Translations under genes and position numbers: made by a program
Notes under the pieces: model-generated
Told to the model about the DNA's origin: nothing
The model's input: only the letters and a program-made list of their open reading frames with translations
The model's database searches: none
Source: Ylistrum balloti
Lineage: Eukaryota
Length of the DNA: 64,000 nucleotides
NCBI RefSeq assembly: GCF_031769215.1
Contig: NW_026782064.1
Location: forward strand, 1,674,001-1,738,000
Direction: 5' to 3'
Shown here: positions 184-53,311 of the stretch, in pieces
Position numbering within the stretch: the stretch's first letter is position 1
Layout of the letters: each line of letters starts with the position of its first letter

Positions 184-3100
184 CTGTAAAAGGAACATTT
201 TATATAAAGGGACACTGTAAAATGGGACAATCTACATTAAAGAACATCGTAACATAAAGAGACATTTCAGAAATACAAGATCTTAGGAGTTTTCATTTCA
301 ATGAAATTTTATGAAACAAAAACTTGGAAGTATTTTTGCAAGTCCTTTTTTGAAATTCAAAATGCGGAGAAAAAATTAAATGGAGGTAGCCATTTTGCTG
401 CACTATGTTGACTTCATGACAGAATATCATTGTCCATATTGACATCACAACGGATTTCTGACCAGCACAGCTTATTGGTACTGTAGTGTATTATAATCCC
501 TAATCCTTAAAGTTGAACACACTATTACCGATATATCGAATCAAATCATGTAGCTAACAAGTCTTTTAATTGATTGTGGTTGTATTTACTTAAAGACCGA
601 GTCATTACAATTGTTTTCTAGAAACTAACTTTCTTTTATTGCTACGATGTTTGACTTGTCTTTGTCTTAATTTAAAGGGATTCACTTTTGCAAAAGTAAT
701 CACACAGGAATGAAAACTGGCTTACACTGTAACACAAATTAAATGATTTTTCATAACATATCATACCTAAGCTTGAGCAATATATTACAGGGCAGTAAAT
801 TACCTCCACACTGTAGAGATGTTTTACTTTTTTACTGACTATTAACTCTCCTGGTTTGATGTGAATAACTTACAGTCACATGTTTGAATGGTAGCAGAGT
901 GATCAGAATATTAGACTTAATGTTGTGTATATTCCCCTAAAAATAATCAAGACTCAGGTCTTTGGTCTCTCTGGAATGACTGTCACATATCATCCAGAAT
1001 GGCTGATTACGGTAGGCAGAGTATAAATTTATCATGAAAATTACCATTTTGAGAGGTAGAACTCGTACAACTTGACAGGACATCTGAGTGGATTGTCTAG
1101 ATTTTCAGCTTGTTCATACACCGGCACCTCATCTTTTTGTTTCTTCTTCTGGTTCACATCATCTAGAAAACAGAATAAGCACCAGTGAATGACAAAGCAT
1201 TTAACAGTTTTGTCCATCATGTACTTTCTAGCATTAACAACTCACTCTTATAAACAAATAGTGATGTGAAGGGTAAAAATAGACCACAGATTCAAATCTT
1301 AAAACCACACCAAAACCTACACACTGTAGAAAAAATTGGTTGATGAGTGAGTTTTACAGAAAATTTTGACCTTGGTGTTACTGTGAACTTATTATGACAT
1401 TTGACCTCTTGTCTCCCTAACTAATGTCCTCTTAGTCATGATGTTCACTAAATATACTCAAGAAAACAAGATGCTGTAACAAGGTACAAACATGCTTCTG
1501 GACAATTCTAGTAAAATTAACTTCACAGAATACTCATATAGAAAAATAAGCTGATTCAGCAAAACAAATTAGTTCTGCTTGTACTCATATGGTCTGATGG
1601 CTTTTACCAAAAAGAGACATAATTTTGATAAAAAGTGGACAGTGTTTTAGTGATTTCATAGCATGGAACCAAATCTCTATACGATTGCAGCAAAACCTCT
1701 GAAAATAAATGCAGCCACAAGAAGTTGAAGAGAGATATATATGATGACTGAGTAACTAACATCACAACATACACTTTTATCTTGGAGATCGGACATAAGT
1801 CCTACAAAGGAGAAGAGATCACTGGGTTCTGTGTGTTTCCACAAGCACAAAACCATTATAATTTACTAAAGAGACAAATGATTAAGCTCAGTGAGGCCAT
1901 GGAGATCACCTACTTGCGACTTTGGTTGGGTTTGGGCAGTAGTAGCGTAGATAGACACTTCGACCAGTGGTGTTGTTCTTGCCAATTGGAGTTTTCTTCC
2001 AGTGCTTCATGATATGTGTAAAAGAAAGCTTCATATGGTCATCGACCTCCTTGAGCATGAAGTACTTGGTGTTGAAGAAGACAAGAGTGTTAAGAAGGAC
2101 ATGAGGAGAGTGGGCACCTAACTGTTTACACTCCCAAAGGTGTTCCTCCTCAATACGACACACAAGCTGGCCTGTAAAACAGTCACACAGATTTTTTAAA
2201 AATTGCTCAAAAAAGAGCTTTTGTCCTAACTAAATCTTTAAGCTATATCCTTGCCAAAGTATCTATATAAAGTTGTACAACAGTTTCTTATAGACACAAA
2301 GGTAACATAATCATCTATGGATACACATAATATACTTTAAATGTTTTCGTCCAATTCTGTCTCAATTCACGAGCGCCGGCAGAGTGATCCATATTATATT
2401 TCATTTTAGACCTAACATTTAGCAGCAATAGAAGATTTTCTGGAATAATTTGAGGGAAAAAAAATTCTAAAAAAGATCTTCAAGATGAGAACCTAAAAAG
2501 TCCTAACATTAAATAAATGAATGTCACATCAGTAGAAAATAGAGTACTGATGATTTTAACTGTATCTAAATAATATACCATATTCTACAAAATATTCATA
2601 GGATTCTTAGGACATGTGAAATTAAATTGGACAAGGCAGCAATGATTATTTATGTGAAATAATTTATAGAGATTTATTGGATACATATTAAGTATCAGTG
2701 CTATACTTAAAGGTTTACTTACCTGCAGTGTTAATCAGTGCTATACTTAAAGGTTCACTTACCTGCAGTGTTAATCAGTGCTATACTTAAAGGTTCACTT
2801 ACCTGCAGTGTTAATCAGTGCTATACTTAAAGGTTCACTTACCTCCAGTGTTAATCAGTGCTATACTTAAAGGTTCACTTACCTCCAGTGTTAATCAGTG
2901 CTATACTTAAAGGTTTACTTACCTGCGGTGTTAATCAGTGCTATACTTAAAGGTTCACTTACCTGCAGTGTTAATCAGTGCTATACTTAAAGGTTCACTT
3001 ACCTGCAGTGTTAATCAGTGCTATACTTAAAGGTTCACTTACCTGCAGTGTTAATCAGTGCTATACTTAAAGGTTCACTTACCTCCAGTGTTAATCAGTG

Positions 3101-6100
3101 CTATACTTAAAGGTTCACTTACCTCCAGTGTTAATCAGTGCTATACTTAAAGGTTCACTTACCTCCAGTGTTAATCAGTGCTATACTTAAAGGTTCACTT
3201 ACCTGCAGTGTTAATCAGTGCTATACTTAAAGGTTCACTTACCTCCAGTGTTAATCAGTGCTATACTTAAAGGTTCACTTACCTGCAGTGTTAATCTTGG
3301 GCTCATATCTGTTCAGGACTTCATTCAAACACTCTGTGAATTTCTCATAATACATATCCGTGAAGATGTTATCAATCCTGCTATTCTCGAACAGATACTG
3401 CTGAATTCCTGCAACAGAGTTCCTTCATAAATGTCACATATGTAACACTGGTCATCATCTATTTCAATGTTATTTTTAATATTGTTATATCATTAAAACC
3501 CAGGAAAAACTAATCTGACACTACTCCAACTGAGCTACCTATTGTACGCAATGTAACAGAGGTCATTATTTGTGTCAATGCCTCTGCTTGGATTTGAACT
3601 AAGGACCTCTGGCTTATTAGTCAACTGATGCTCAACCGTTAGAGCTAAAGAGAAGTTTTTTGAGGTTAGTATTTCATCAGAGTTATACATAACATTCAAC
3701 AATTACAATTATAACAGAAACTCTGAAATAAAGTTATTTATCAGCATTAAAGATTCAAGATAATTTGAACTTCATTAACAATTTCTTAATAAAAAAGTAC
3801 ATCTCCTGACAGAAATAGGCCTGTGTCATAAATATTGAAAGACACATTTGTATTAGCATTATTGTGATATAATAACATAATGTTATCTTTGTCTCAGCAG
3901 AGAAAACATGCTGAGTCTGGCTTAAAATCTGCCTGTCTTACAGAAAAATAAATTTTAGATTTTTAAAGAACATGTTGTAATCATAAGAAATGTTAAAATA
4001 TTTACAAGAGAATGACAAAGCCTACATGATAGACTTTAAAACTTACCTAGACAAAGGTAATAAATACTGTCGGGAGCATACTCGTCCCCATTGGGTTTCC
4101 GCACCTCCTTCACAAACAGACACAGTGAGTAATTGAGTTCGTCAGCGGAACATCCCATCATGTCTGTTTTGAAGAGTTTTAGTTTGCCAGATCCGTGTTT
4201 AGACACTTTCTCTAACTGGGCGTTCTTTAGTACCACCCAATGTTTCCATGCATTGACACCATATGTGTACTTTAGGTACATATTGGCATCTAGAGGAATC
4301 TCTGGTACTTCCTGCTCCATAACCTGCTCTGTCTCCATCTTCTCTTCCTGTTCGAGGGGATGTGCCACTTTCTGTCGCTTGCTTTTGCGACTGGCTCTTG
4401 ACCCTGACCTCTTTGGGCCACGACCCCTTGACCTGGTCTCTCTTGTTGGAATAAGCTCCTCTTCTTCCTCTTCCTGAGGAGGAGGTGGTGGAGGTTCTGT
4501 AATGTAGGAAATGTTACATTACTTGCTATTTTAGACTCTAAAGTTAATTGGAGGCAAGGAATATTTATGCATAAATTTTTCGAAAATGATTAAGAAATCA
4601 TTTGCAATGTAAGGTTTATTTGTTTACAACTGAAACATACTTTCAGAAGTAAATAAGCTGTATTTCACCAATTCAACCACTGCTGAACTACAAGATGTAT
4701 GCATTTCAGTACAAAATTGAAATTTGAAAAATTTCAAAAAATCTAAACTGAGCATAAAGAGATTTTAGCTGAAATGCTGTTTCTTTCTGATATGTATAAA
4801 TAATCACTTTTGCCTTTTCTCCAAATGAAGTATTGACAGATTTACCTTTACCTGTAACAGACAACAGCCTCTTTTTAATTAATATTTATTCTAAAATGAT
4901 CCAGAATAATAGATATTTGTTATTGACCTTCAAACAAAATGTGAGATAAACATAATATTCATTTCGTAATCATGAAACTTCAGGTACACATGTTATTATC
5001 ATGCAGTATTGGTACCAACTCATAGATAACAAGATCTCAACATACAGTACACAAATAAAGAACAATATACGTGCGCGACCAAACCAGTCATTTCTAATTT
5101 TTCAACAAACTTTATATATACAAATTGGCATGAATATTTAAAACATTAAAAGAAATGACTGGACAGATTTTTGGTGATATTGAGTGACCTTGTGTACCTG
5201 CTTTTGAAAGTTGCCATGAATGCGGACACAGAAATATCAGTGTTACATTAATAAGACTAAGTATGATCTCCCAATGTATCTTTTTTCTTTTAACGATTAC
5301 GATGATAGAAACCAATCTCAACAAGCTCGGGGTAAATGGTAGGATCTTTATTGGTTTGTGGACCAGTTTCGCCTGAACCTATGTGGGCTTCATCAGGACA
5401 CCAATTCTAAACAAAATTCTCTCCTAAAGTACATAAAAATCAGAAGGGTTCCTAGAATTTTCTTCTGAGTCACTGGCTCTTGAATAATTTTTCAAACCTT
5501 TACATAAAAACCTGGAGCTAGAATTAAATGCTCTGAACTCATAATCTTTCTCTTGAGATGTATCTGGCTGCTGACTTCTAAGCTTAATACTTCCATTGTT
5601 GGTTTGAATAATAACATTCTTTTATTGTTCCTGACTGAAATTTCTTTGCAGAAATTGATAAAATTATCCTGGTTTTCCGCACAAATTGCACTGTGAGGTC
5701 TTGAATCAATCTTCTCTGTGTTTTCCCTTCTCCAACCTATTTCTATCAAGTTTGAGGATTTATATAGCAAATTTGTAATTCAATCACATATTGTTTCATA
5801 AACTTAACAAAAGTAAAAAGAGGAAAACAATAAATATTAAATAAATTTGGTATGGTATCAGTCAATAATAATTCAAAATTTAGTTAAATATCTTGGTTGG
5901 TATTTTATATTATGTTAATCAGTTAAAGAATTCTACAAAAAAAAGTTCTTCAAATATTCTGATTACTGGGAGAGAGACAGCTATGTTACAGTGATAAAAA
6001 TACTGCTCAATCAGCACTTTTTATCTTTATATCAATATATCTTATATTAAGCAGAACCTTTCTGACAACAGCAGAATGGTGATGAGCATGTCATTCCACA

Positions 6101-9100
6101 TTGAGCTTTTTGGTCAAATAGGGCAATGATAGGATAAGGTGACATTAATCTACACATGGACCATATATTCTCTACATTGTTGTTGGTACTGTACTTTAAA
6201 ATACGTAGTAAATACAAAATTTGATAGATTCTCATTCTCTGTCAGATACATACAGTGTGGCAGAATATTCAGAAAATTTTACTTATATTTTCAGATCTGT
6301 AAAACGAAAAAAATTTATGTTTGAGAAGTTGATCAATAACTGAATACCATTAAATGACCCCGATATTTACTATATATTCTGTAAAAGAATACTGAAACAT
6401 ACATACATACTGGCACATAAATTGCAATTTCACATCTCCAAGCTGTTTCTGCCTTTTAGAAGCCATTCATGCATGAAATATGATCCATACCAATAAGAAG
6501 CACTTAAGATACACTAGGATCTATGATAAGTACACAACTACTTAAACCTACCAGTGTTTACAGGGACAGGGTCTATGGAACTTTCAAGGTCCATCACAGG
6601 TTCAGAAGTCATCTCTGTTGCCATACGAAGGGCCATCTGCAGCATGTCTTCACCAAACTCTCCGTTGGCTTGGCCAGGTGTGGGTGTGACTTCAGGGACT
6701 GGGTCAGGCATAGGTGAGGGAGAGTTTGACACAGCATTCTCATCAGCTGTTGGAGTTTCTGTTATAGGAAAAAAATCAAATGCTATTGATTTGTTTGTTT
6801 TATAATATATAAATAAGTACATGTATATATATTTTATAAATTTCTGATCCTGTTTAATACCAGAAATACTACACAGAAAAACTTTCTTGTAAAACTTCAA
6901 AATGATGAGGTTGTGCACAGACACACTTTATTGTTTGATAAGCAGAAACAAGTATTGTGTTTTATAAGTTGACGATTCTGTAAATTCAGAAAAGTTTTCC
7001 CTCATTATAACTGATCGGTGCTAGAGGCCATAACACTAGTATCATATAACACGATAATGCAAAGCATGACATTATCCCCTGTGCCCCACTGTTTAATGAA
7101 AAGACAATCAATCACAACATATGTAAATATTATAATAACAGATATCATCTCCATTCCACCACTGTTACTGATTTTTTCATGTAGATCATCTTTTCCTGTA
7201 GTATGGTTTGGCATCATTCACAGATACAATGGTTACATAATCAACAGGTTAAATAGGTTCTATTTATTAATTATAATCGATCCATACAACTGAAAGTATT
7301 GAAATGAAGTACTTAACTAAAGTACTAGTTTTATAAATACAAAGGTTTAGGTAATTATCTTGAACAGTTTAAAAGAACAGGTCTTAAAGGACTGCACTTT
7401 GTGATTTTACCTATCTGTTTCCATGGTAACTGAAAAAGTATTTAAATGGAGAACTTCCTCATAACAAAAGGCACCACTACATTACTAGCTTGATAACTGT
7501 ATAAAGTTTTGAGTGATTGTTTTCAATGTTTTCAGAGCACTGGTCCGGAAAATGACCCACAGAACCCGATCTAACATCCCCTGCAAACATGTTTTACGGG
7601 TGATAATGAAGACCATAAATATCTTTTTACATATGTACTACCATTTGTCCTAGACCAGAGTAACATATAAGTCCAACATTGTTCAGGACTAGCATGCCAT
7701 ACTTACTTGCGGAAGTCAAAATGTCCTCATTGTCTGATTCTGATTCTGAGTCTGGATCCACAACTGCCACTGCCTCAGCCATCATCAAGAGCTCAGCTTC
7801 CAAAGGGTCAGACGGTATTCTTTCCTGGATTTCCTGTTCCCATGTAAGTCTAATTAGTATTCTGTATTCTGGACAATTTTTACACTACAGTTGGTTTTAT
7901 GATACAGGAAATGAAGGTGCAATCCGTAATAACTTTATGCTCTTCATGCTAAATGGGACATGGTAAGGAATTAACATGTATGTTTATTTCAATAACTAAT
8001 TATAAAAAACTATCAACATCTAAACCATGGCCACTGGTCTACTGTTTACTACACTGACCTTTATGTGTTTGAAGATGCTGCTAGCTGACTTCTTGGTTGT
8101 GGGGATGAAGCATGGTACTGGAATGGGAACAGGGATTGGGATTGGTACCGGTGTGTACTGAGTGTACATCATCATTGGTGTAGGGATGTAGTAAGGAATG
8201 GGCAACGGTACCAGGCATCGCTTAGGCGTCCAGTCGTCCTCTACAACACAAAACAATGGCTCTGTCAATATGTATTTTCTTCTAATGGTGAATCTGACAC
8301 TATCAATTTTTCACAGATATTGCTATCTTCAAGACAGGTGTAGATAAGTGACAATTTGCTTCTCACTCTAAGCAGGCCACATCACTATTTGGAGTCTGAT
8401 CTAGCGGAAAAACACTGTACATATATATCTGTACACAAAATTATATTCTGAAATTACAACGATGGCAGAATTAATTCTTGACTATAACTTATCTGTGTCT
8501 CCTTGACTTGTGTGTGGGGTTTGACCTTGATGTTAACTGTAACTTTCCTGTCTGTGTCTCCTTGTTGTGTGTGTAGGACCTGACCTTCCTGTGAACTGTA
8601 ACTTACCTGTCTGTGTCTCCTTGTTGTGTGTGTAAGACCTGACCTTAGTCTGTACTGTAACTTACCTGTTTGTGTCTCCTTGTTGTGTGTGTAGGACCTG
8701 ACCTTAGTCTGTACTGTAACTTACCTGTCTGTGTCTCCTTGGTGTGTGTGTAGGACCTGATCTTGGTCTGAACTGTAACTTACCTGTCTGTGTCTCCTTG
8801 TTGTGTGTGTAGGACCTGACCTTAGTCTAAACTGTAACTTACCTTTCTCTGTCTCCTTGTTGTGTGTGTAGGGCCTGACCTTGGTCTGAACTGTAACTTA
8901 CATGTCTGTGTCACCTTGTTGTGTGTGTAGGACCTGACCTTGATGTGAACTGTAACTTACCTGTCTGTGTTTCCTTGGTCTGTGTGTAGGACCTGACCTT
9001 AGTCTTAACTGTAACTTACCTGTCTGTGTCTCCTTGTTGTGTGTGTAGGACCTGACCTTGATGTGAACTGTAACTTACCTGTCTGTGTCTCCTTGTTGTG

Positions 9101-12100
9101 TGTGTAGGACCTGATCTTGGTCTGAACTGTAACTTACCTGTCTGTGTCTCCTTGGTCTGTGTGTAGGACCTGACCTTAGTCTTAACTGTAACTTACCTGT
9201 CTGTGTCTCCTTGGTCTGTGTGTGGGGCCTGCAGGATGTGGCCTTGGTCTGTACAAAAGGTTTACACAAGAGTGATTTGTTCTTGACTGTCTTTGGTGGT
9301 GGAGGTTGGATAATGATCTGTTGTGGTGGTGTCTGCATGGCTGTAGTGGTAACAGATGCCTGTCAATACAAAATTCACTAAATTAAATAAATCCTGTACA
9401 TTGATCACTTGTCAATGAAATTTACAAAGTTTTCTATCCATTATTTGACAGATGGTAAAAAAGTAAACTGGTAAATCTGTCTATGATGAATTTATTTTCA
9501 CCAACATCAAACACACATAAAAAAGTACTATTTTACATAGTTGTTACAAAAGAAGTTGCTCATTGTATGTTACGAGACACACAAGAAATTTACATAACAT
9601 TGTTATGCGCGATACAATGTGATAATTGACAGTATTTTGTACATTCCTGGAATGGTTTATAGGTTAAATTGTTTGAATTAAGACACAGACAGCGCACCTG
9701 TGTAATCCCTTAAAAAAATAAAAATAATCCTAAATCTCAAAGAAACAAGAACTAGTGGTTGATACAAACCCTTGGTTGTGCCTGACTGTTGACGAGATTT
9801 GGCATCTGAGTATTTCTCATTGCTTGTTGCTGCGGCCCTGGAATATACAGCAGTTTTATGGTTATTTCTGTATTTCTATCAACACTTTAATTTCATGAGT
9901 AACATACAATATTTCCATGAGCAACATACATCAGGGTTTGTTTTATGAGGAGAACAAGTTAAAGATATATAGACATTAATTACCCTTCTCTAACAGACAT
10001 AATGCCACATTGCCTGGCTACAGTTCAGATAGTTGTTGATCAACATTATTATATATAAATGGATTAAGAAAAAACATCAAAAGACAATATTTCTTTCATA
10101 TCTTGTACATTGTTTTATATAAGACATATTTTCTTAGCATTCAATTATGTGATATGCTGTCTTTGATGTGTCATTAAGTTATCTTCTGTTGTTCCATTTG
10201 TCTGAGACTTGTTTACAGTAAGAACTGATGAGATTCTTTAGAACAGTATAATAGAATCAGGTATAATTGTGTCATACTTTAACATAAAGGTACTCCTCCT
10301 GAAATCTGGCAGATGAACCACATCACACATGACATTTATTCTTAGAGAATTTCTGGCTAGGACAATGAAATACAAATAGCAAACAGTGGAAGTAGATATT
10401 AGACCTTTGACTGTGACCCTATGTGTATGCAAATGGGAAAAAGTCTGCAACAGATATTGACTTTCAAACAGTTAGTGGTATTTAAATACAGAAAATGACC
10501 ATAATATTACTGGTCACAACCTGGGCCGAAGGCTGAATATTATCCTCATTCTTAAACAGGAACAAAAGTATCTTTATAGTTAGCAATATTAATTAAAGCG
10601 GCATTCTAAACTAAGAATTAAATATCAAACTACATGTGTACCAAGCATAAAAAAGCATGCATTAAATCATAACACCAAAGCACCGTTCACCCAATTCTGG
10701 GATCATCATTTTCATCTCTAATTCTATTTAATCTCTTTTACTAGTTTTTGTAAATGAGACCATGGTCTTACACACTGATTAATCAAAGTAAATATACACA
10801 GAAGCCAGGAAATTCAAAAAGCAGATGTATATATATATAAGGTAATTCTATATTTGTTTACCAAAGACATTTTGTTAAAGGATGGAAGGAGAGAAACTTG
10901 ACAAATTTTTCAAAAATAAAGGTGAATTTTTTTGAAAGAAATCACTGAAGCAGCCGAAGCATCCTAGTACATTTCTAACACCAATTACAACAGATATATA
11001 TAATATTATACATCAAATCAGTATGCATTAATTTCTGACGGTTAATCTTCAAACAAATGAAGACTTTATAATAAACTAAATGCTTCCTTATCATTCCCTT
11101 TGACAGCCAATGGGTAATTGCAAGGCGTGTAAAAGCACACAGAAATAAATTATAAGCAGATTTTTAAATATAGTATTTAAGCATAAGATATAAAACTAAT
11201 CTTGTTCCAAAAAATACATAGTTTATGATTAGCTATTTAAATAAATATTTTTTACTGGTATATAAGTAGATACATGACTGAAAAAGCTCAATTCTAAAAA
11301 CATATTGTATCTGTACAAAATCCTGATTTAAAATGATTATATTTAAGATACAGAAGTTTGATTGAGAGTTTTGATGATTCACTGAATCAAAATAGTCAAC
11401 TATAATGCATGATCTTGTATATTAAGTAGAAAAAAAAACCTCACGTATCCATAATGTATATCAGTAATGTGTTATTCAGCTATACAATTGGAAACAAGAT
11501 AAAGTGTTCTCTATGATATTAAAAGTGCATGCATTTTGCAAATTAAATACCTCGTAGCAACTGGACATTGTTTTTTTTAGGCTGGGTCTTGCTTGCATCT
11601 GCAGCAAGATAAAATTTTGTTCATTTTCATACTTAAATCTATAAGTAAAAGTGTTGATAAAATTTGAAAATGACAAAACCTTTATATCAAAATCATGTTA
11701 TAGATGGAGAAATGTAAATCTCAAATCAAATTATATTAAAATGTATCAAATGAGATAATAAATGTCCTACCTTCTACACAAATCTAATGGTACTGTTTTT
11801 ATATGAAACTGACTATTAATGCAAGACTGTAAAGTCAAACTTAAATAAAAAAGACATCTGTGTCAGTCTCATATATTAGGTAATCTATCTAACAGTACAG
11901 CAGAGGATGGGAGAAAACAAGGAATGTATGATAACTAGTTGTTAAACTTACCTGTGTTTTGAGATGATAAGGAAACCACATTGGAGATGACTGGCACATG
12001 TGTCTGTTTTTGCTGAGAGGTAACCACTTCAACAGATATATACAAAATACAATGCACATATTGATAAGGGTTGTCTAATGATAAATCTAATAAACCAGGT

Positions 12101-15100
12101 AGAGACAGGGGCCATGAAGACATCTCTGATTCCCACTTCCGTCCAGTTTTTTCCCTCCATTCTAATAAGCCCACTATATCAATGTCAACAACCACATTTG
12201 ATTCACTATCTTTAGCGAATTCTCATAATAATTTAAATAATGAAATAATTTGGCCCATTTGGAAAAATGTTAAGATCACTGAGTTTCCCTCAATTTATTA
12301 TATGAAGACTGCATGATTTGGTGAAAATTATGAGAATCTAAGACAAGAAAGAGGCTCATTGATGCAGACTTTACTGTCTATATGTATCAACAGTTATAAG
12401 AGATCATGATGTCCTTTGCTACATACACAATACGTGTTTATAATGTGATAGTTCTGACTAACAGACTTACACCAGGAGATACCTGTTTATAATGTGATAG
12501 TTCTGACTAACAGACTTACACCAGGAGATACCTGTTTATAATGTGATAGTTCTGACTAACAGACTTACACCAGGAGATACGTGTTTATAATGTGATAGTT
12601 CTGACTAACAGACTTACACCAGGAGATACGTGTTTATAATGTGATAGTTCTGACTAACAGACTTACACCAGGAGATACGTGTTTATAATGTGATAGTTCT
12701 GACTAACAGACTTACACCAGGAGATACGTGTTTATAATGTGATAGTTCTGACTAACAGACTTACACCAGGAGATACCTGTTTATAATGTGATAGTTCTGA
12801 CTAACAGACTTACACCAGGAGATACGTGTTTATAATGTGATAGTTCTGACTAACAGACTTACACCAGGAGATACGTGTTTATAATGTGATAGTTCTGACT
12901 AACAGACTTACACCAGGAGATACGTGTTTATAATGTGATAGTTCTGACTAACAGACTTACACCAGGAGATACCTGTTTGTAATGTGATAGTTCTGACTAA
13001 CAGACTTACACCAGGAGATACGTGTTTATAATGTGATAGTTCTGACTAACAGACTTACACCAGGAGATACGTGTTTATAATGTGATAGTTCTGACTAACA
13101 GACTTACACCAGGAGATACGTGTTTATAATGTGATAGTTCTGACTAACAGACTTACACCAGGAGATACCTGTTTATAATGTGATAGTTCTGACTAACAGA
13201 CTTACACCAAAGATACCTGTTCTCTACCATTACAGGTCAAATATCACTTATAGCCTATGATAAAATTTCATTAGACAACAGTAATGAACATGATTTCTTT
13301 CAATACAGAATAGAGGTCAAAATTATTTTAGTGGTCAAAATACTGACCTTTCAACTTTACAGGAGTTTGATTATTCATATAGAGCAAAGCACTTAAAAAA
13401 CTAAACATAGGAAAACATCTACTTGACCCCAAGTCTCAAAAACACTTCTATCCATTGTTTGGGGTTTTGCCTATTACATCTGAGCAAATTATCAATTATA
13501 TTTTTTGGGTGGTACTTTAAACAAAACCTAGAGTCCTGGGGTATGATAAATACTTTACTGGAATAGCCCTAAAATACCTGAATACCTTGGGTGGGGTAAA
13601 TGTTTTATTGGAACAGTCCTTCACAAAACCCATAGTCCTGGGGTGGGGTAAATGCTTTATTGGAACAGTCCTTCACAAAACCCATAGTCCTGGGGTGGGG
13701 TAAATGCTTCATTGGAACAGTCCTTAACAAAACCCATAGTCCTGGGGTGGGGTAAATGCTTTATTGGAACAGTCCTTCACAAAACCCATAGTCCTGGGGT
13801 GGGGTAAATGTTTTATTGGAACAGTCCTTCACAAAACCCATAGTCCTGGGGTGGGGTAAATGCTTTATTGGAACAGTCCTTCACAAAACCCATAGTCCTG
13901 GGGTGGGGTAAATGCTTTATTGGAACAGTCCTTCACAAAACCCATAGTCCTGGGGTGGGGTAAATGCTTTATTGGAACAGTCCTTCACAAAACCCATAGT
14001 CCTGGGGTGGGGTAAATGCTTTATTGGAACAGTCCTTCACAAAACCCATAGTCCTGGGGTGGGGTAAATGCTTTATTGGAACAGTCCTTCACAAAACCCA
14101 TAGTCCTGGGGTGGGTTAAATGCTTTATTGGAACAGTCCTTAACAAAACCCATAGTCCTGGGGTGGGGTAAATGCTTTATTGGAACAGTCCTTCACAAAA
14201 CCCATAGTCCTGGGGTGGGGTAAATGCTTTATTGGAACAGTCCTTCACAAAACCCATAGTCCTGGGGTGGGGTAAATGCTTTATTGGAACAGTCCTTTAC
14301 AAAACCCATAGTCCTGGGGTGGGGTAAATGCTTTATTGGAACAGTCCTTCACAAAACCCATAGTCCTGGGGTGGGGTAAATGCTTTATTGGAACAGTCCT
14401 TCACAAAACCCATAGTCCTGGGGTGGGGTAAATGTTTTATTGGAACAGTCCTTCACAAAACCCATAGTCCTGGGGTGGGGTAAATGTTTTATTGGAACAG
14501 TCCTTCACAAAACCCATAGTCCTGGGGTGGGGTAAATGCTTTATTGGAACAGTCCTTAACAAAACCCATAGTCCTGGGGTGGGGTAAATGCTTTATTGGA
14601 ACAGTCCTTCACAAAACCCATAGTCCTGGGGTGGGGTAAATGCTTTATTGGAACAGTCCTTCACAAAACCCATAGTCCTGGGGTGGGGTAAATGCTTTAT
14701 TGGAACAGTCCTTCACAAAACCCATAGTCCTGGGGTGGGGTAAATGTTTTATTGGAACAGTCCTTCACAAAACCCATAGTCCTGGGGTGGGGTAAATGTT
14801 TTATTGGAACAGTCCTTCACAAAACCCATAGTCCTGGGGTGGGGTAAATGCTTTATTGGAACAGTCCTTCACAAAACCCATAGTCCTGGGGTGGGGTAAA
14901 TGCTTTATTGGAACAGTCCTTCACAAAACCCATAGTCCTGGGGTGGGGTAAATGCTTTATTGGAACAGTCCTTAACAAAACCCATAGTCCTGGGGTGGGG
15001 TAAATGCTTTATTGGAACAGTCCTTAACAAAACCCATAGTCCTGGGGTGGGGTAAATGCTTTATTGGAACAGTCCTTCACAAAACCCATAGTCCTGGGGT

Positions 15101-18100
15101 GGGGTAAATGCTTTATTGGAATAGTCCTTCACAAAACCCATAGTCCTGGGGTGGGATAAATGTTTTACCGGAAGAGCCCTAAATAAGAGCTAAACCTGGA
15201 GTCCTGATGTCTGATTACTGGAATAAATAGCCCATTCCCCAAAACAAAAAACAATGGAAAAGCAATCATACAGAATGGAATTCTTTTGTCTAAGTCTATT
15301 TATTACTTTATAGGTTTTTTTCTATTTCTGAGGAGAGATCAAAATCTTTAAAAATTGAACCTTTAAAGTCAAATAGAGGAAGTTGATAGCTGTTTGATGA
15401 CTTCCTTCAAAAATACATCCACTTTGCTTCAAACTACTCTTAAAACCACCTGAATTCAAACCATTGAGAAAAAATTTGGCACATCAGCTAGCCTTACACT
15501 TTAGACTGTGCTTACTTTATTAATCGATAATACTGCTGATAGATGCAGAAGATAATTACTTTAGAATCAGTGATTTTACCACATTTAATCAAAGGGGGAA
15601 AAAATTGTGTACCTCTTGAGGAAGCTCTAGTAGGAGTGTTTCTAGTATTGGTTCTTCCTACTGTCGTTTTCTGATTTTGTGGTGCAGTGTTCATTATAGG
15701 TGTCTGAGATTTATTAGATCCTCCAGCAAACTGTGATTGAAATGTCATGACACACTGATAGGAACAGAAGTTCCTAACTGAAGCATCACTCATTGTGAGA
15801 TGATACTGGGCAGGTACAAACTTTCTACACTGGTCACAGACCACCGCCTGATTGGATGTCGCCTGTAGATTCACTCTGTATAATGAAAGACAGTTGAGTG
15901 AACAGAACAGTTGGTACTTGTTGTTGGCATCAACACGCTCGATCATGTCAAAGTTGCTCTTTTTACAATTACACCATGCACAAGATACAACCTTTTTGTT
16001 CAGAGCTTTGAATGTGTTCACACACATAAAGCTGCAGAAACGTTTCTGTTGGCCTTCAAATTGTATATACTGTGGTGCCATACCCTCATTGTAGCAGTAG
16101 ACACCACAATTGTCACAAGTGTTCATGGTCAGTTTATTGGCATACTGAAAAGCTGAGAAGCATGGATCGCCACACAATCTGTTCATCTTCCCTTCCAATT
16201 TAATCTCATGCTTCACAGGCCCTGTTTTCCTACAAACAGCACATTGGAAGTTCCCTTTAGGGGGCACCTGTGATTTCTGAGGACGGTCAATACCAACAAT
16301 CTCAACATCACGATTGGATTTCTCCTCATACTTCTGCAAACAGCTTTGACTACAAAAGTCCTTGAATAAAGCATCTTTCCCAACTGGTGCTACAAAAGCA
16401 TCAGATATTTTGGTAACATCCTTTTGGCAAAATTCGCAAAGTTTTTGTCTCTTCTTGAATTCATTATAGCAAGGGCCAGAACAAAATTGTTTGACATCAT
16501 TATCAACCCGAGCACAGAATTTACCCTTGGAGGCTTGCTGAACAGTAAGACCACAATAGTTACAAGCAGCATTCAGTCCAGCTTGAAATTTTCCCAAACA
16601 GTCCTCACCACAGAAGTCCATACATTGCCAGTTGAGGAATGGCTTTGATGTCTTTACATTCATCAGCTGACATATGGAGCATGTCTTGTATCTCTCCTGA
16701 GAAGGTGGAGGAACAGGTGGTGGCGGGGCTTGGGCAGGACCCTCTGGCTTCTTTGTCACCTGGTTGTCAGCTGATGCACGAAGAAACATAGTGGGGTTGG
16801 CACGGAACTGCTTGAAGCAGATATCATCACACAGATGCTTGATATCTCCATTTCTCACAATGTTATATTTACATTTACCAATCTGAAAAAGAAATATCAC
16901 AAAAGGTGATAAAATAGTCAACACAAAAATGTAAATAGATCCGAACATCTTGATCAACCACTTCAATCCTTTTTGTCCATAAGAAAACTAAACCATAATA
17001 ATACAAAAAAGCATTTTTTCAATGAATTTTTTTAGTAGTAAACTCTTGGTTCAAACAAGAACATCACGCTTTCTTCCAATTTAATGAAATGCTGAAGGTA
17101 CTATGTTTGTAAAAGTATCTGTTCTCAGTTTGTAATCACATGCAAACATATCTATTTCTCATACCTACCTTTTGACAAACAATGCAGGTCTGAGTTTTGG
17201 ATGTACTCTTAACTTTCGTCTCCCCACTTTTAGGTTCTTGTTTGATTTCTTTGGAAACTGAAAATGTAACATGATTTACAAACTAAATAGCTAAAACTGA
17301 AATAAATATGAACTCTGCTGAAATCTAACTTTAAATCATAAGTTCAGTTATCCATTCTGAAATAATGTTTCATGAAACATCAACATTTGACAGGAACTGA
17401 CTTCATGTGAGGCCTTGAAAAGTCAAGTTTTTCCCCTATATTATATTTGTGTCAAGAAAGCTGCAACTCCACAACATAAAACCATTAATTTTTCAGCTAC
17501 CTCAATTTCAGTTTCAACAAATAATTGTAAAGACTTTATAATTTTCCTTACTAAACCTTAGACAGTTTGCTGTACATGATAGTAAACAGGATCTTACCAT
17601 TTTCTTCTTTGATATTGAGTTCCCCTTCTTTTTTGTCTTCTTTCTTTTCCTCAAACTGTGAAATTTACATATAAGAGAATGGAATAAAAAAAGATGTATT
17701 GTTTGTAAATAGTAAAATGTTTATGATTTGCAGGTTTGATTATCCTTGTAGGTCTCTGTGAATTCAGGCACCATCTCATACCGATTGTGACTTCCAAGTA
17801 GTTAGCATCTCTTCATGATAGAATAATGCTGACAATAATAAAACCAATTAAATGATTCTTCAGGATGATGAAATCAAAGTACTATTAATACTAATACAAG
17901 GTCCCGGTACTACACTTCCCCTTTCAATCTTCACATTGACATTACTACCCAATGAATGAAGAAAACAATGTACCTGCCCAGCAGTAGTTGGTGTAATGTA
18001 TACATATACTGAGCCAGAGTGCTGTTTTGTATGTGGTTGATTTCTTCTGATGACATATCAACAACATTTTCATACTAATGATTTAAGATCTTCTAGAAAC

Positions 18101-52317: not shown

Positions 52318-53311
52318 TCATACACTGTGTGAAAATTAGGTAGCATGGTGGTCATGTTATTGACTAATGTAGGTGGTGTCGCAGAGTTTGGTAGGAATAT
52401 CACGGTTATTGTCATACACTGTGTGAAAGTTAGGTAGCATGGTGGTCATGTTATTGACTAATGTAGGTGGTGTCGCAGAGTTTGGTAGGAATATCACGGT
52501 TATTGTCATACACCGTGTGAAAGTTAGGTAGCATTGTGGTCATGTTATTGTCTGATGTAGGTGGTGTAGAATTTGGTAGGAATATCACGGTTATTGTCAT
52601 ACACTGTGTGAGAGTTAGGTAGCATGGTGATCATGTTATTGTCTGATGTAGGTGGTGTCGCAGAGTTTGGTAGGAATATCACGGTTATTGTCATACACTG
52701 TGTGAGAGTTAGGTAGCATGGTGGTCATGTTATTGTCTGATGTAGGTGGTGTAGAATTTGGCAGGAATATCACGGTTATTGTCATACACTGTGTGAGAGT
52801 TAGGTAGCATGGTGGTCATGCTATTGTCTGATGTAGGTGGTGTAGAATTTGGTAGGAATATCACGGTTATTGTCATACACTGTGTGAGAATTAGGTAGCA
52901 TGGTGGTCATGTTATTGTCTGATGTAGGTGGTGTAGAATTTGGCAGGAATATCACGGTTATTGTCATACACTGAGTGAGAGTTAGGTAGCATGGTGGTCA
53001 TGTTATTGTCTGATGTAGGTGGTGTAGAATTTGGTAGGAATATCACGGTTATTGTCATACACTGTGTGAGAGTTAGGTAGCATGGTGATCATGTTATTGT
53101 CTGATGTAGGTGGTGTAGAATTTGGCAGGAATATCACGGTTATTGTCATACACTGTGTGAGAGTTAGGTAGCATGGTGGTCATGTTATTGTCTGATGTAG
53201 GTGGTGTTGTAGAATTTGGTAGGAATATCACGGTTATTGTCATACACTGTGTGAGAGTTAGGTAGCATGGTGGTCATGCTATTGTCTGATGTAGGTGGTG
53301 TTGTAGAATTT
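52318..53311. repeat. 91-94-bp tandem array (about 10.5 copies) downstream of the antistasin-like exon
   Basis: Unit TCATACACTGTGTGAGAGTTAGGTAGCATGGTGGTCATGTTATTGTCTGATGTAGGTGGTGTAGAATTTGGTAGGAATATCACGGTTATTG. Confidence 0.95.

Follow-up and report, generated by a model that had tools for sequence, protein, structure and literature searches.

The window analysed here is a stretch of 64,000 nucleotides of the Ylistrum balloti genome (NCBI RefSeq assembly GCF_031769215.1, contig NW_026782064.1, positions 1,674,001 to 1,738,000), and its minus strand carries a ZMYM/Woc-type gene whose sixth intron contains a minisatellite of 52-bp units. Read in the sense of the gene, these units resemble polyadenylation (poly(A)) sites. 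The array is best explained, with a probability of about 0.6, as a young, locus-specific intronic minisatellite in which the poly(A)-like character of the unit is incidental and the copies are mostly silent. All positions below are those of the window.

The array had been described in the initial annotation, made from the letters alone, as about 30 tandem cassettes of 52 bp in sense orientation, each with a hexamer, a CA and a G/U-rich element in that order and almost all of them with AATAAA. Tandem Repeats Finder and a reading of the individual units bear this out. A single indel-free array is returned with a period of 52 bp and 31.7 copies at 96% matches, as is typical of minisatellites, i.e. 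head-to-tail units of 10-100 bp. AATAAA is exact in 29 units on the minus strand, which is the sense strand of the gene, at a strict spacing of 52 nt, and a single core unit reads AATGAA (at 13713). The hexamer is followed 16-17 nt on by the CA, and TGGGTTTTGTG lies 7 nt after the CA, so that each such unit has what characterizes a poly(A) site at the sequence level, namely a hexamer on the transcribed strand, a CA 10-30 nt downstream and a U- or GU-rich downstream element. More than half of the core units (16/30) are identical to one another. The variant ones (AATAAAA, GTT) often stand in neighbouring pairs, as expected if blocks of units were duplicated by unequal exchange. Since a 32-nt core pattern is matched 30 times where 0 matches are expected, the repeat as such far exceeds what chance would give; its resemblance to a poly(A) site is another question and is taken up below.

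The ends of the array are informative about its history. Both edge copies differ from the core in the same way, as they have TTTAGGGCT for GTGAAGGACT, TTTATC for TTTACC, and xGTAAA for AATAAA. A homogenised core between diverged boundary copies is the mark of concerted evolution, and, since boundary copies of tandem repeats are known to escape homogenisation (PMC3087553), the edge copies of the 52-bp array fit the usual turnover of minisatellites. In particular, the survival of xGTAAA in both edge copies indicates that AATAAA arose inside the array, and an ancestral unit with xGTAAA, from which AATAAA is derived, is the simplest reading of the two edges.

The array is also restricted to this locus. 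The only public run found to hold this DNA is a genomic one, without RNA, in which 1.5 array units could be compared. Its contigs cover the exon and the introns contiguously at a depth of 10-15 without any joint, with 21 substitutions and 5 indels relative to the window over 3.3 kb, and thus represent genomic DNA of another haplotype or individual. K-mers of the array reach a depth of 188-315 as compared with about 12.6 in the single-copy flank, which corresponds to about 15-25 copies, an exact count being beyond these contigs. As this independent run carries the array k-mers, the array is no assembly artefact, and as their depth matches this one locus, the unit is not a genome-wide satellite. 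Within the window, the only further copies of the unit are those at its own edges, and metagenome contigs contained none. A structured RNA or ribozyme array was considered as well and rejected, because the array has no family match in Rfam and its RNA folds less stably than shuffled sequences (z-score +1.9; a fold of at least equal stability was reached by 197 of 200 shuffles).

A related bivalve (L001) has 71% nucleotide identity in the finger exon, and its interval from exon 6 to the exon matching 9323-9194 (about 8.3 kb) contains no array and only a 24-bp repeat in two copies. On the contig of a second relative (L002), 430 nt of intron are without hexamer and without repeat. Judged from these intervals, the array is lineage-specific. 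Regulated isoforms are expected to conserve either the site or the truncated frame, and neither was found: the array is missing from L001, and the tail of 33 residues that follows read-through of the exon 6 donor is not conserved, the corresponding tails being unrelated in seven relatives. A homologue search with the open reading frame (ORF) of the exon returned read-through ORF calls on genomic contigs and a few multi-exon products; no short isoform is named among them, within a length limit that hides full-length kin. Within single multi-exon products from relatives, exon 6 is joined onward to exon 7 and later exons.

In the gene around the array, a 484-codon open frame on the minus strand (15512-16966) encodes MYM-type zinc fingers (zf-FCS, E 4e-25), and further downstream in the gene are a QRICH1 domain (4036-4368, E 2e-28) and a DUF3504 domain (1906-2163, E 5e-28). 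A Capitella protein of 704 aa is collinear from the finger exon (16186-15707) through nine more exons, up to window position 6. With both domains present and the Capitella protein collinear, the full-length gene is intact. The position of the exon 6 donor is supported by the similarity to the seven relatives, which ends exactly there, at a common ...TRxxxRG, the sequence beyond being unrelated in each. Exon 7 was placed by the motif VPVISNVxSL (12021-11953), which is common to three multi-exon products of relatives, by the AG at 12028-12027, by the CAG/GTAAGT after 11952 (the slash marks the exon-intron junction) and by the matching phase. The acceptor of intron 6 has a purine-rich end. The features of the gene and its arrays are collected in Table 1.

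Table 1. Features of the ZMYM/Woc-type gene and of its intronic arrays, in window coordinates.
Feature	Position	Strand	Remarks
52-bp minisatellite	13521-15167	-	sense to the ZMYM gene; core units with AATAAA, CA at +16-17 nt and GU-rich TGGGTTTTGTG
homogenised core	13604-15117	-	29 AATAAA units and 1 AATGAA unit
diverged 5' edge copy	15130-15183	-	GGTAAA in place of AATAAA
diverged 3' edge copy	13520-13573	-	AGTAAA in place of AATAAA
exon 6, large MYM-zinc-finger exon	15613-16882	-	5' boundary approximate; 3' end is where conservation stops
donor GT of exon 6	15611-15612	-	GAG/GTACAC, non-consensus
in-frame donor read-through	15512-15612	-	33-residue tail to the TAA at 15512-15514
single-copy sense AATAAA	15516-15521	-	overlaps the last read-through codons, directly before the TAA; then donor-like GTAAGC
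intron 6, 3586 nt	12027-15612	-	52-bp and 49-bp arrays fill 68%
49-bp array, 16.2 copies	12430-13221	-	in intron 6; every unit has GGTGTAAGT (GTAAGT, U1-type site) on the sense strand
exon 7, 75 nt	11952-12026	-	phase same as exon 6 end; donor CAG/GTAAGT; encodes VPVISNVVSL
59-bp array	8492-9231	-	intronic; sense strand has CAGGTAAGT; array start lies within the end of an exon (mapped at 9293-9186)
40-bp array	2694-3296	-	intronic; sense strand has CAGGTAAGT; array start lies at the end of an exon (mapped at 3409-3281)

The relation between the array and exon 6 is as had been proposed. The array was said to lie about 450 nt behind a weak donor, and its first full unit starts 445 nt downstream of a donor that is non-consensus; read-through of this donor was said to stay in frame up to a TAA, and it does so over 33 codons. 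As a whole, the earlier description is correct in every detail that could be checked. An alternative donor beside the read-through stop, AA/GTAAGC, was dropped, as its use would change the phase. The exon 6 donor is non-consensus in three species, with GAG/GTACAC in the window, GAG/GTTCAG in L001 (at about 11056) and GAG/GTTTGT in L002 (at about 1793), and the AGAG at the end of exon 6 is conserved across the three. A weak donor may thus have been conserved at the end of this exon of 1.3 kb.

How such an array could have formed and be tolerated can be outlined as follows. Starting from a local stretch of about 52 bp that was already there in two diverged copies, the array would have grown to about 30 copies in intron 6 by replication slippage and unequal exchange. 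One G-to-A change would have turned the ancestral xGTAAA into AATAAA, and the turnover of the array would then have carried the AATAAA variant through the core, so that the likeness to a poly(A) cassette would be a by-product of what was amplified. Their intronic position leads one to expect that the copies are mostly ignored, being silenced by splicing and by the protection provided by U1, a small nuclear ribonucleoprotein (snRNP). In Drosophila, poly(A) signals inside introns, strong ones included, are ignored while they remain in an intron and become active once the 5' splice site is removed (PMC3890989). The pre-mRNA would be read through, spliced to exon 7 and continued to the conserved QRICH1/DUF3504 exons, with at most a minor fraction of transcripts ending in or before the array. 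The use of each site must be very low, because 29 sites add up while the conserved downstream exons need to be expressed; the intact state of these exons argues, at the level of sequence, for such a very low per-site use.

Whether a poly(A)-like unit is to be expected by accident was evaluated on the window itself. All 52-mers from those parts of the window that lie outside the arrays were tandemised and scored for the layout of hexamer, CA and downstream element with a score of the authors' own. AATAAA occurs on a given strand in 5.3% of the tandemised 52-mers, AATAAA together with CA in 4.4%, and the two together with an equally good downstream element in 0.15-0.8%. By this order-of-magnitude argument, one such array is within expectation in so repeat-rich a genome.

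A number of points weigh against an incidental and silent array. The score just described is crude and self-written. Outside the array, the sense strand of the gene contains 41 AATAAA or ATTAAA hexamers (1.9 per kb), and just one of these 41 combines a CA with a downstream element that is as rich in GU; being beaten or equalled by so few of them, the unit is a good mimic of a poly(A) site. The effect of the 29 sites is cumulative, so that a use of 1-2% each would already truncate a sizeable share of the transcripts. The array is placed behind a non-consensus donor and, if the Drosophila values apply, mostly past the median range of about 500 nt over which U1 at a 5' splice site protects the downstream sequence (PMC4889658); in the same organism, counter-selection of sense AATAAA is stronger where a weak donor precedes it (PMC4889658). 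Finally, we infer the silence of the copies from DNA and not from RNA. Published findings may thus be said to cut both ways, as silence is the default, yet a weak donor and an array that lies mostly beyond 500 nt make this a place where premature cleavage is likeliest.

On these grounds, the alternative that has to be taken most seriously is that the array is used, i.e. that one of the 29 cassettes, or else the single-copy AATAAA next to the read-through stop, serves as the cleavage and polyadenylation site for a measurable fraction of the ZMYM pre-mRNA. The predicted product would consist of the acidic region, the MYM fingers and the 33-residue tail, would be devoid of QRICH1 and DUF3504, and could represent either tolerated noise or the output of a rheostat. 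The canonical layout of the unit, its rank above 40 of the 41 other sense hexamers of the gene, a donor that is non-consensus in three species, the purine-rich end of the acceptor, the distance of most of the array from the donor in relation to the U1 range (PMC4889658), a predicted lack of structure that would leave the array RNA accessible, and the accumulation of the effect over 29 sites all speak for it. They are opposed by the absence of the array in L001 and the derived state of AATAAA, by the lack of conservation of the tail, by downstream exons that are intact and conserved, so that read-through must be efficient, and by the general silencing of intronic signals (PMC3890989). Use of the array is therefore regarded as possible, although doubtful, and clearly less probable than silence. 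Premature polyadenylation that is incidental and at a low level is a possible outcome.

Three single-copy sense hexamers are closer to the donor than the array (ATTAAA at 15584-15589, AATAAA at 15516-15521 and AATAAA at 15299-15304). If intronic polyadenylation occurs in this gene, the AATAAA at 15516-15521 is the nearest candidate site. Given these three nearer hexamers, a truncated isoform, if any, could do without the array.

The adaptive form of the same idea is the length-dependent rheostat that had been put forward with the initial annotation. In it, each unit would carry a small chance of cleavage, and the length of the array would thereby set the ratio between a finger-only product and the full-length QRICH1/DUF3504 protein. 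Such a rheostat would need, in addition, a copy-number polymorphism that is correlated with the isoform ratio; the signs in the sequence lean against a selected function, and this version is considered very unlikely. Within it, the 16 GTAAGT (U1-type) sites of the 49-bp array might counteract the 52-bp array. A precedent for this notion is the poly(A) site in the 5' long terminal repeat (LTR) of HIV-1, which is silenced by a downstream splice donor.

Similarly small is the probability of a role at the DNA level, in which about 30 GT/CACCC boxes (GGGGTGGGG on the plus strand) would bind factors of the Sp/KLF type, so that the array would serve as an enhancer or chromatin element within the intron and its poly(A)-like motif would be of no consequence. 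CCCCACCCC/GGGGTGGGG, which we take to resemble a GT/CACCC box, is present in every unit; this resemblance comes without conservation, and the array would multiply any G/C-rich 9-mer of its unit in the same manner. The least probable of all is an origin from a splice junction ('mirage' array) or from a transposon: two other arrays of the gene do start at or beside exon ends and contain CAGGTAAGT, but the 52-bp unit has no counterpart among the exons and junctions of the window, and no exon adjoins the array, the nearest lying 445 nt upstream and at a distance of about 1.5 kb downstream. In addition, the k-mer depth is that expected of one locus, the flanks are free of inverted and direct terminal repeats and have no second occurrence in the window, and neither a ribozyme nor an Rfam family is matched, so that both origins were rejected.

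Regarding known systems, the closest are the intronic minisatellites, or variable number tandem repeats (VNTRs), with which the array shares repeat units of some tens of bases in head-to-tail order, a core that is homogenised and edge copies that are diverged, adjacent blocks of variants, and a locus- and lineage-specific occurrence. It differs from them in that its unit holds a full-looking poly(A) layout, in sense, behind a weak donor. The 'mirage' minisatellites, tandem copies of exon-intron boundaries described in amphioxus Adh3 and globins, leave normal splicing undisturbed where this was tested (PMC3087553). They are similar in being intronic arrays that multiply an RNA-processing signal, and two arrays of the present gene are of this type, whereas the 52-bp unit copies no exon-intron boundary and its signal is poly(A)-like and apparently arose by mutation inside the array. 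The cryptic poly(A) signals that are silenced by telescripting (PMC3890989, PMC4889658) likewise consist of a sense AATAAA with downstream elements within an intron. They are scattered single sites, while here 29 near-identical copies stand in a row behind a non-consensus donor, with a far larger cumulative risk.

Two further systems involve poly(A) signals within introns. The first includes the IgM heavy chain, CSTF3 and many mammalian isoforms in which regulated intronic polyadenylation (IPA) gives truncated products. The weak 5' splice site, the poly(A) signal in the next intron and the in-frame read-through to a near stop are common to these cases and to the array; the difference is that IPA relies on one conserved site, whereas a repeat array is found here and neither site nor tail is conserved. 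Sense-oriented intronic retroelements (L1, SVA, ERV) are the second, and they reportedly cause premature polyadenylation. They too are repetitive DNA that brings sense poly(A) signals into an intron, but the 52-bp array is without transposon features and appears to have arisen in place.

The 52-bp array has company. Among the arrays of at least 600 bp, four are in the introns of this gene and five in the window as a whole. The 49-bp array starts 300 nt downstream of the 52-bp array, adjoins no conserved exon, and has an upstream flank with stops in all frames; its units vary, with AAACAGGTATC in some and AAACACGTATC in others. By base composition, GTAAGT would be expected in only about 2% of 49-mers (authors' own arithmetic). 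The 40-bp and 59-bp arrays are donor-echo ('mirage') arrays. All four intronic arrays of the gene multiply an RNA-processing-like signal in sense orientation. Outside the ZMYM gene, an array at 52318-53301 has a period of 91 bp (or 185 bp), 10.7 copies and 95% matches. In L001, a 155/309-bp array is located at 148-1598, about 8 kb upstream of the finger exon and outside the interval orthologous to intron 6. A C/D-box match similar to SNORD47 lies within intron 6 (12219-12284, minus strand) and is probably due to chance, with 22.6 bits as compared with a gathering score of 50 and an E value of 0.58.

As the evidence stands, the minisatellite is one more intronic array in an array-rich genome. 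If its copies are used, the array would be among the rare minisatellites that set an isoform ratio through premature polyadenylation. If they are silent, the locus would represent a natural stress test, in which 29 good-looking poly(A) signals are tolerated behind a weak donor in an essential-looking chromatin gene, and would reveal the robustness with which intronic signals are suppressed by splicing and U1 protection in a mollusc.

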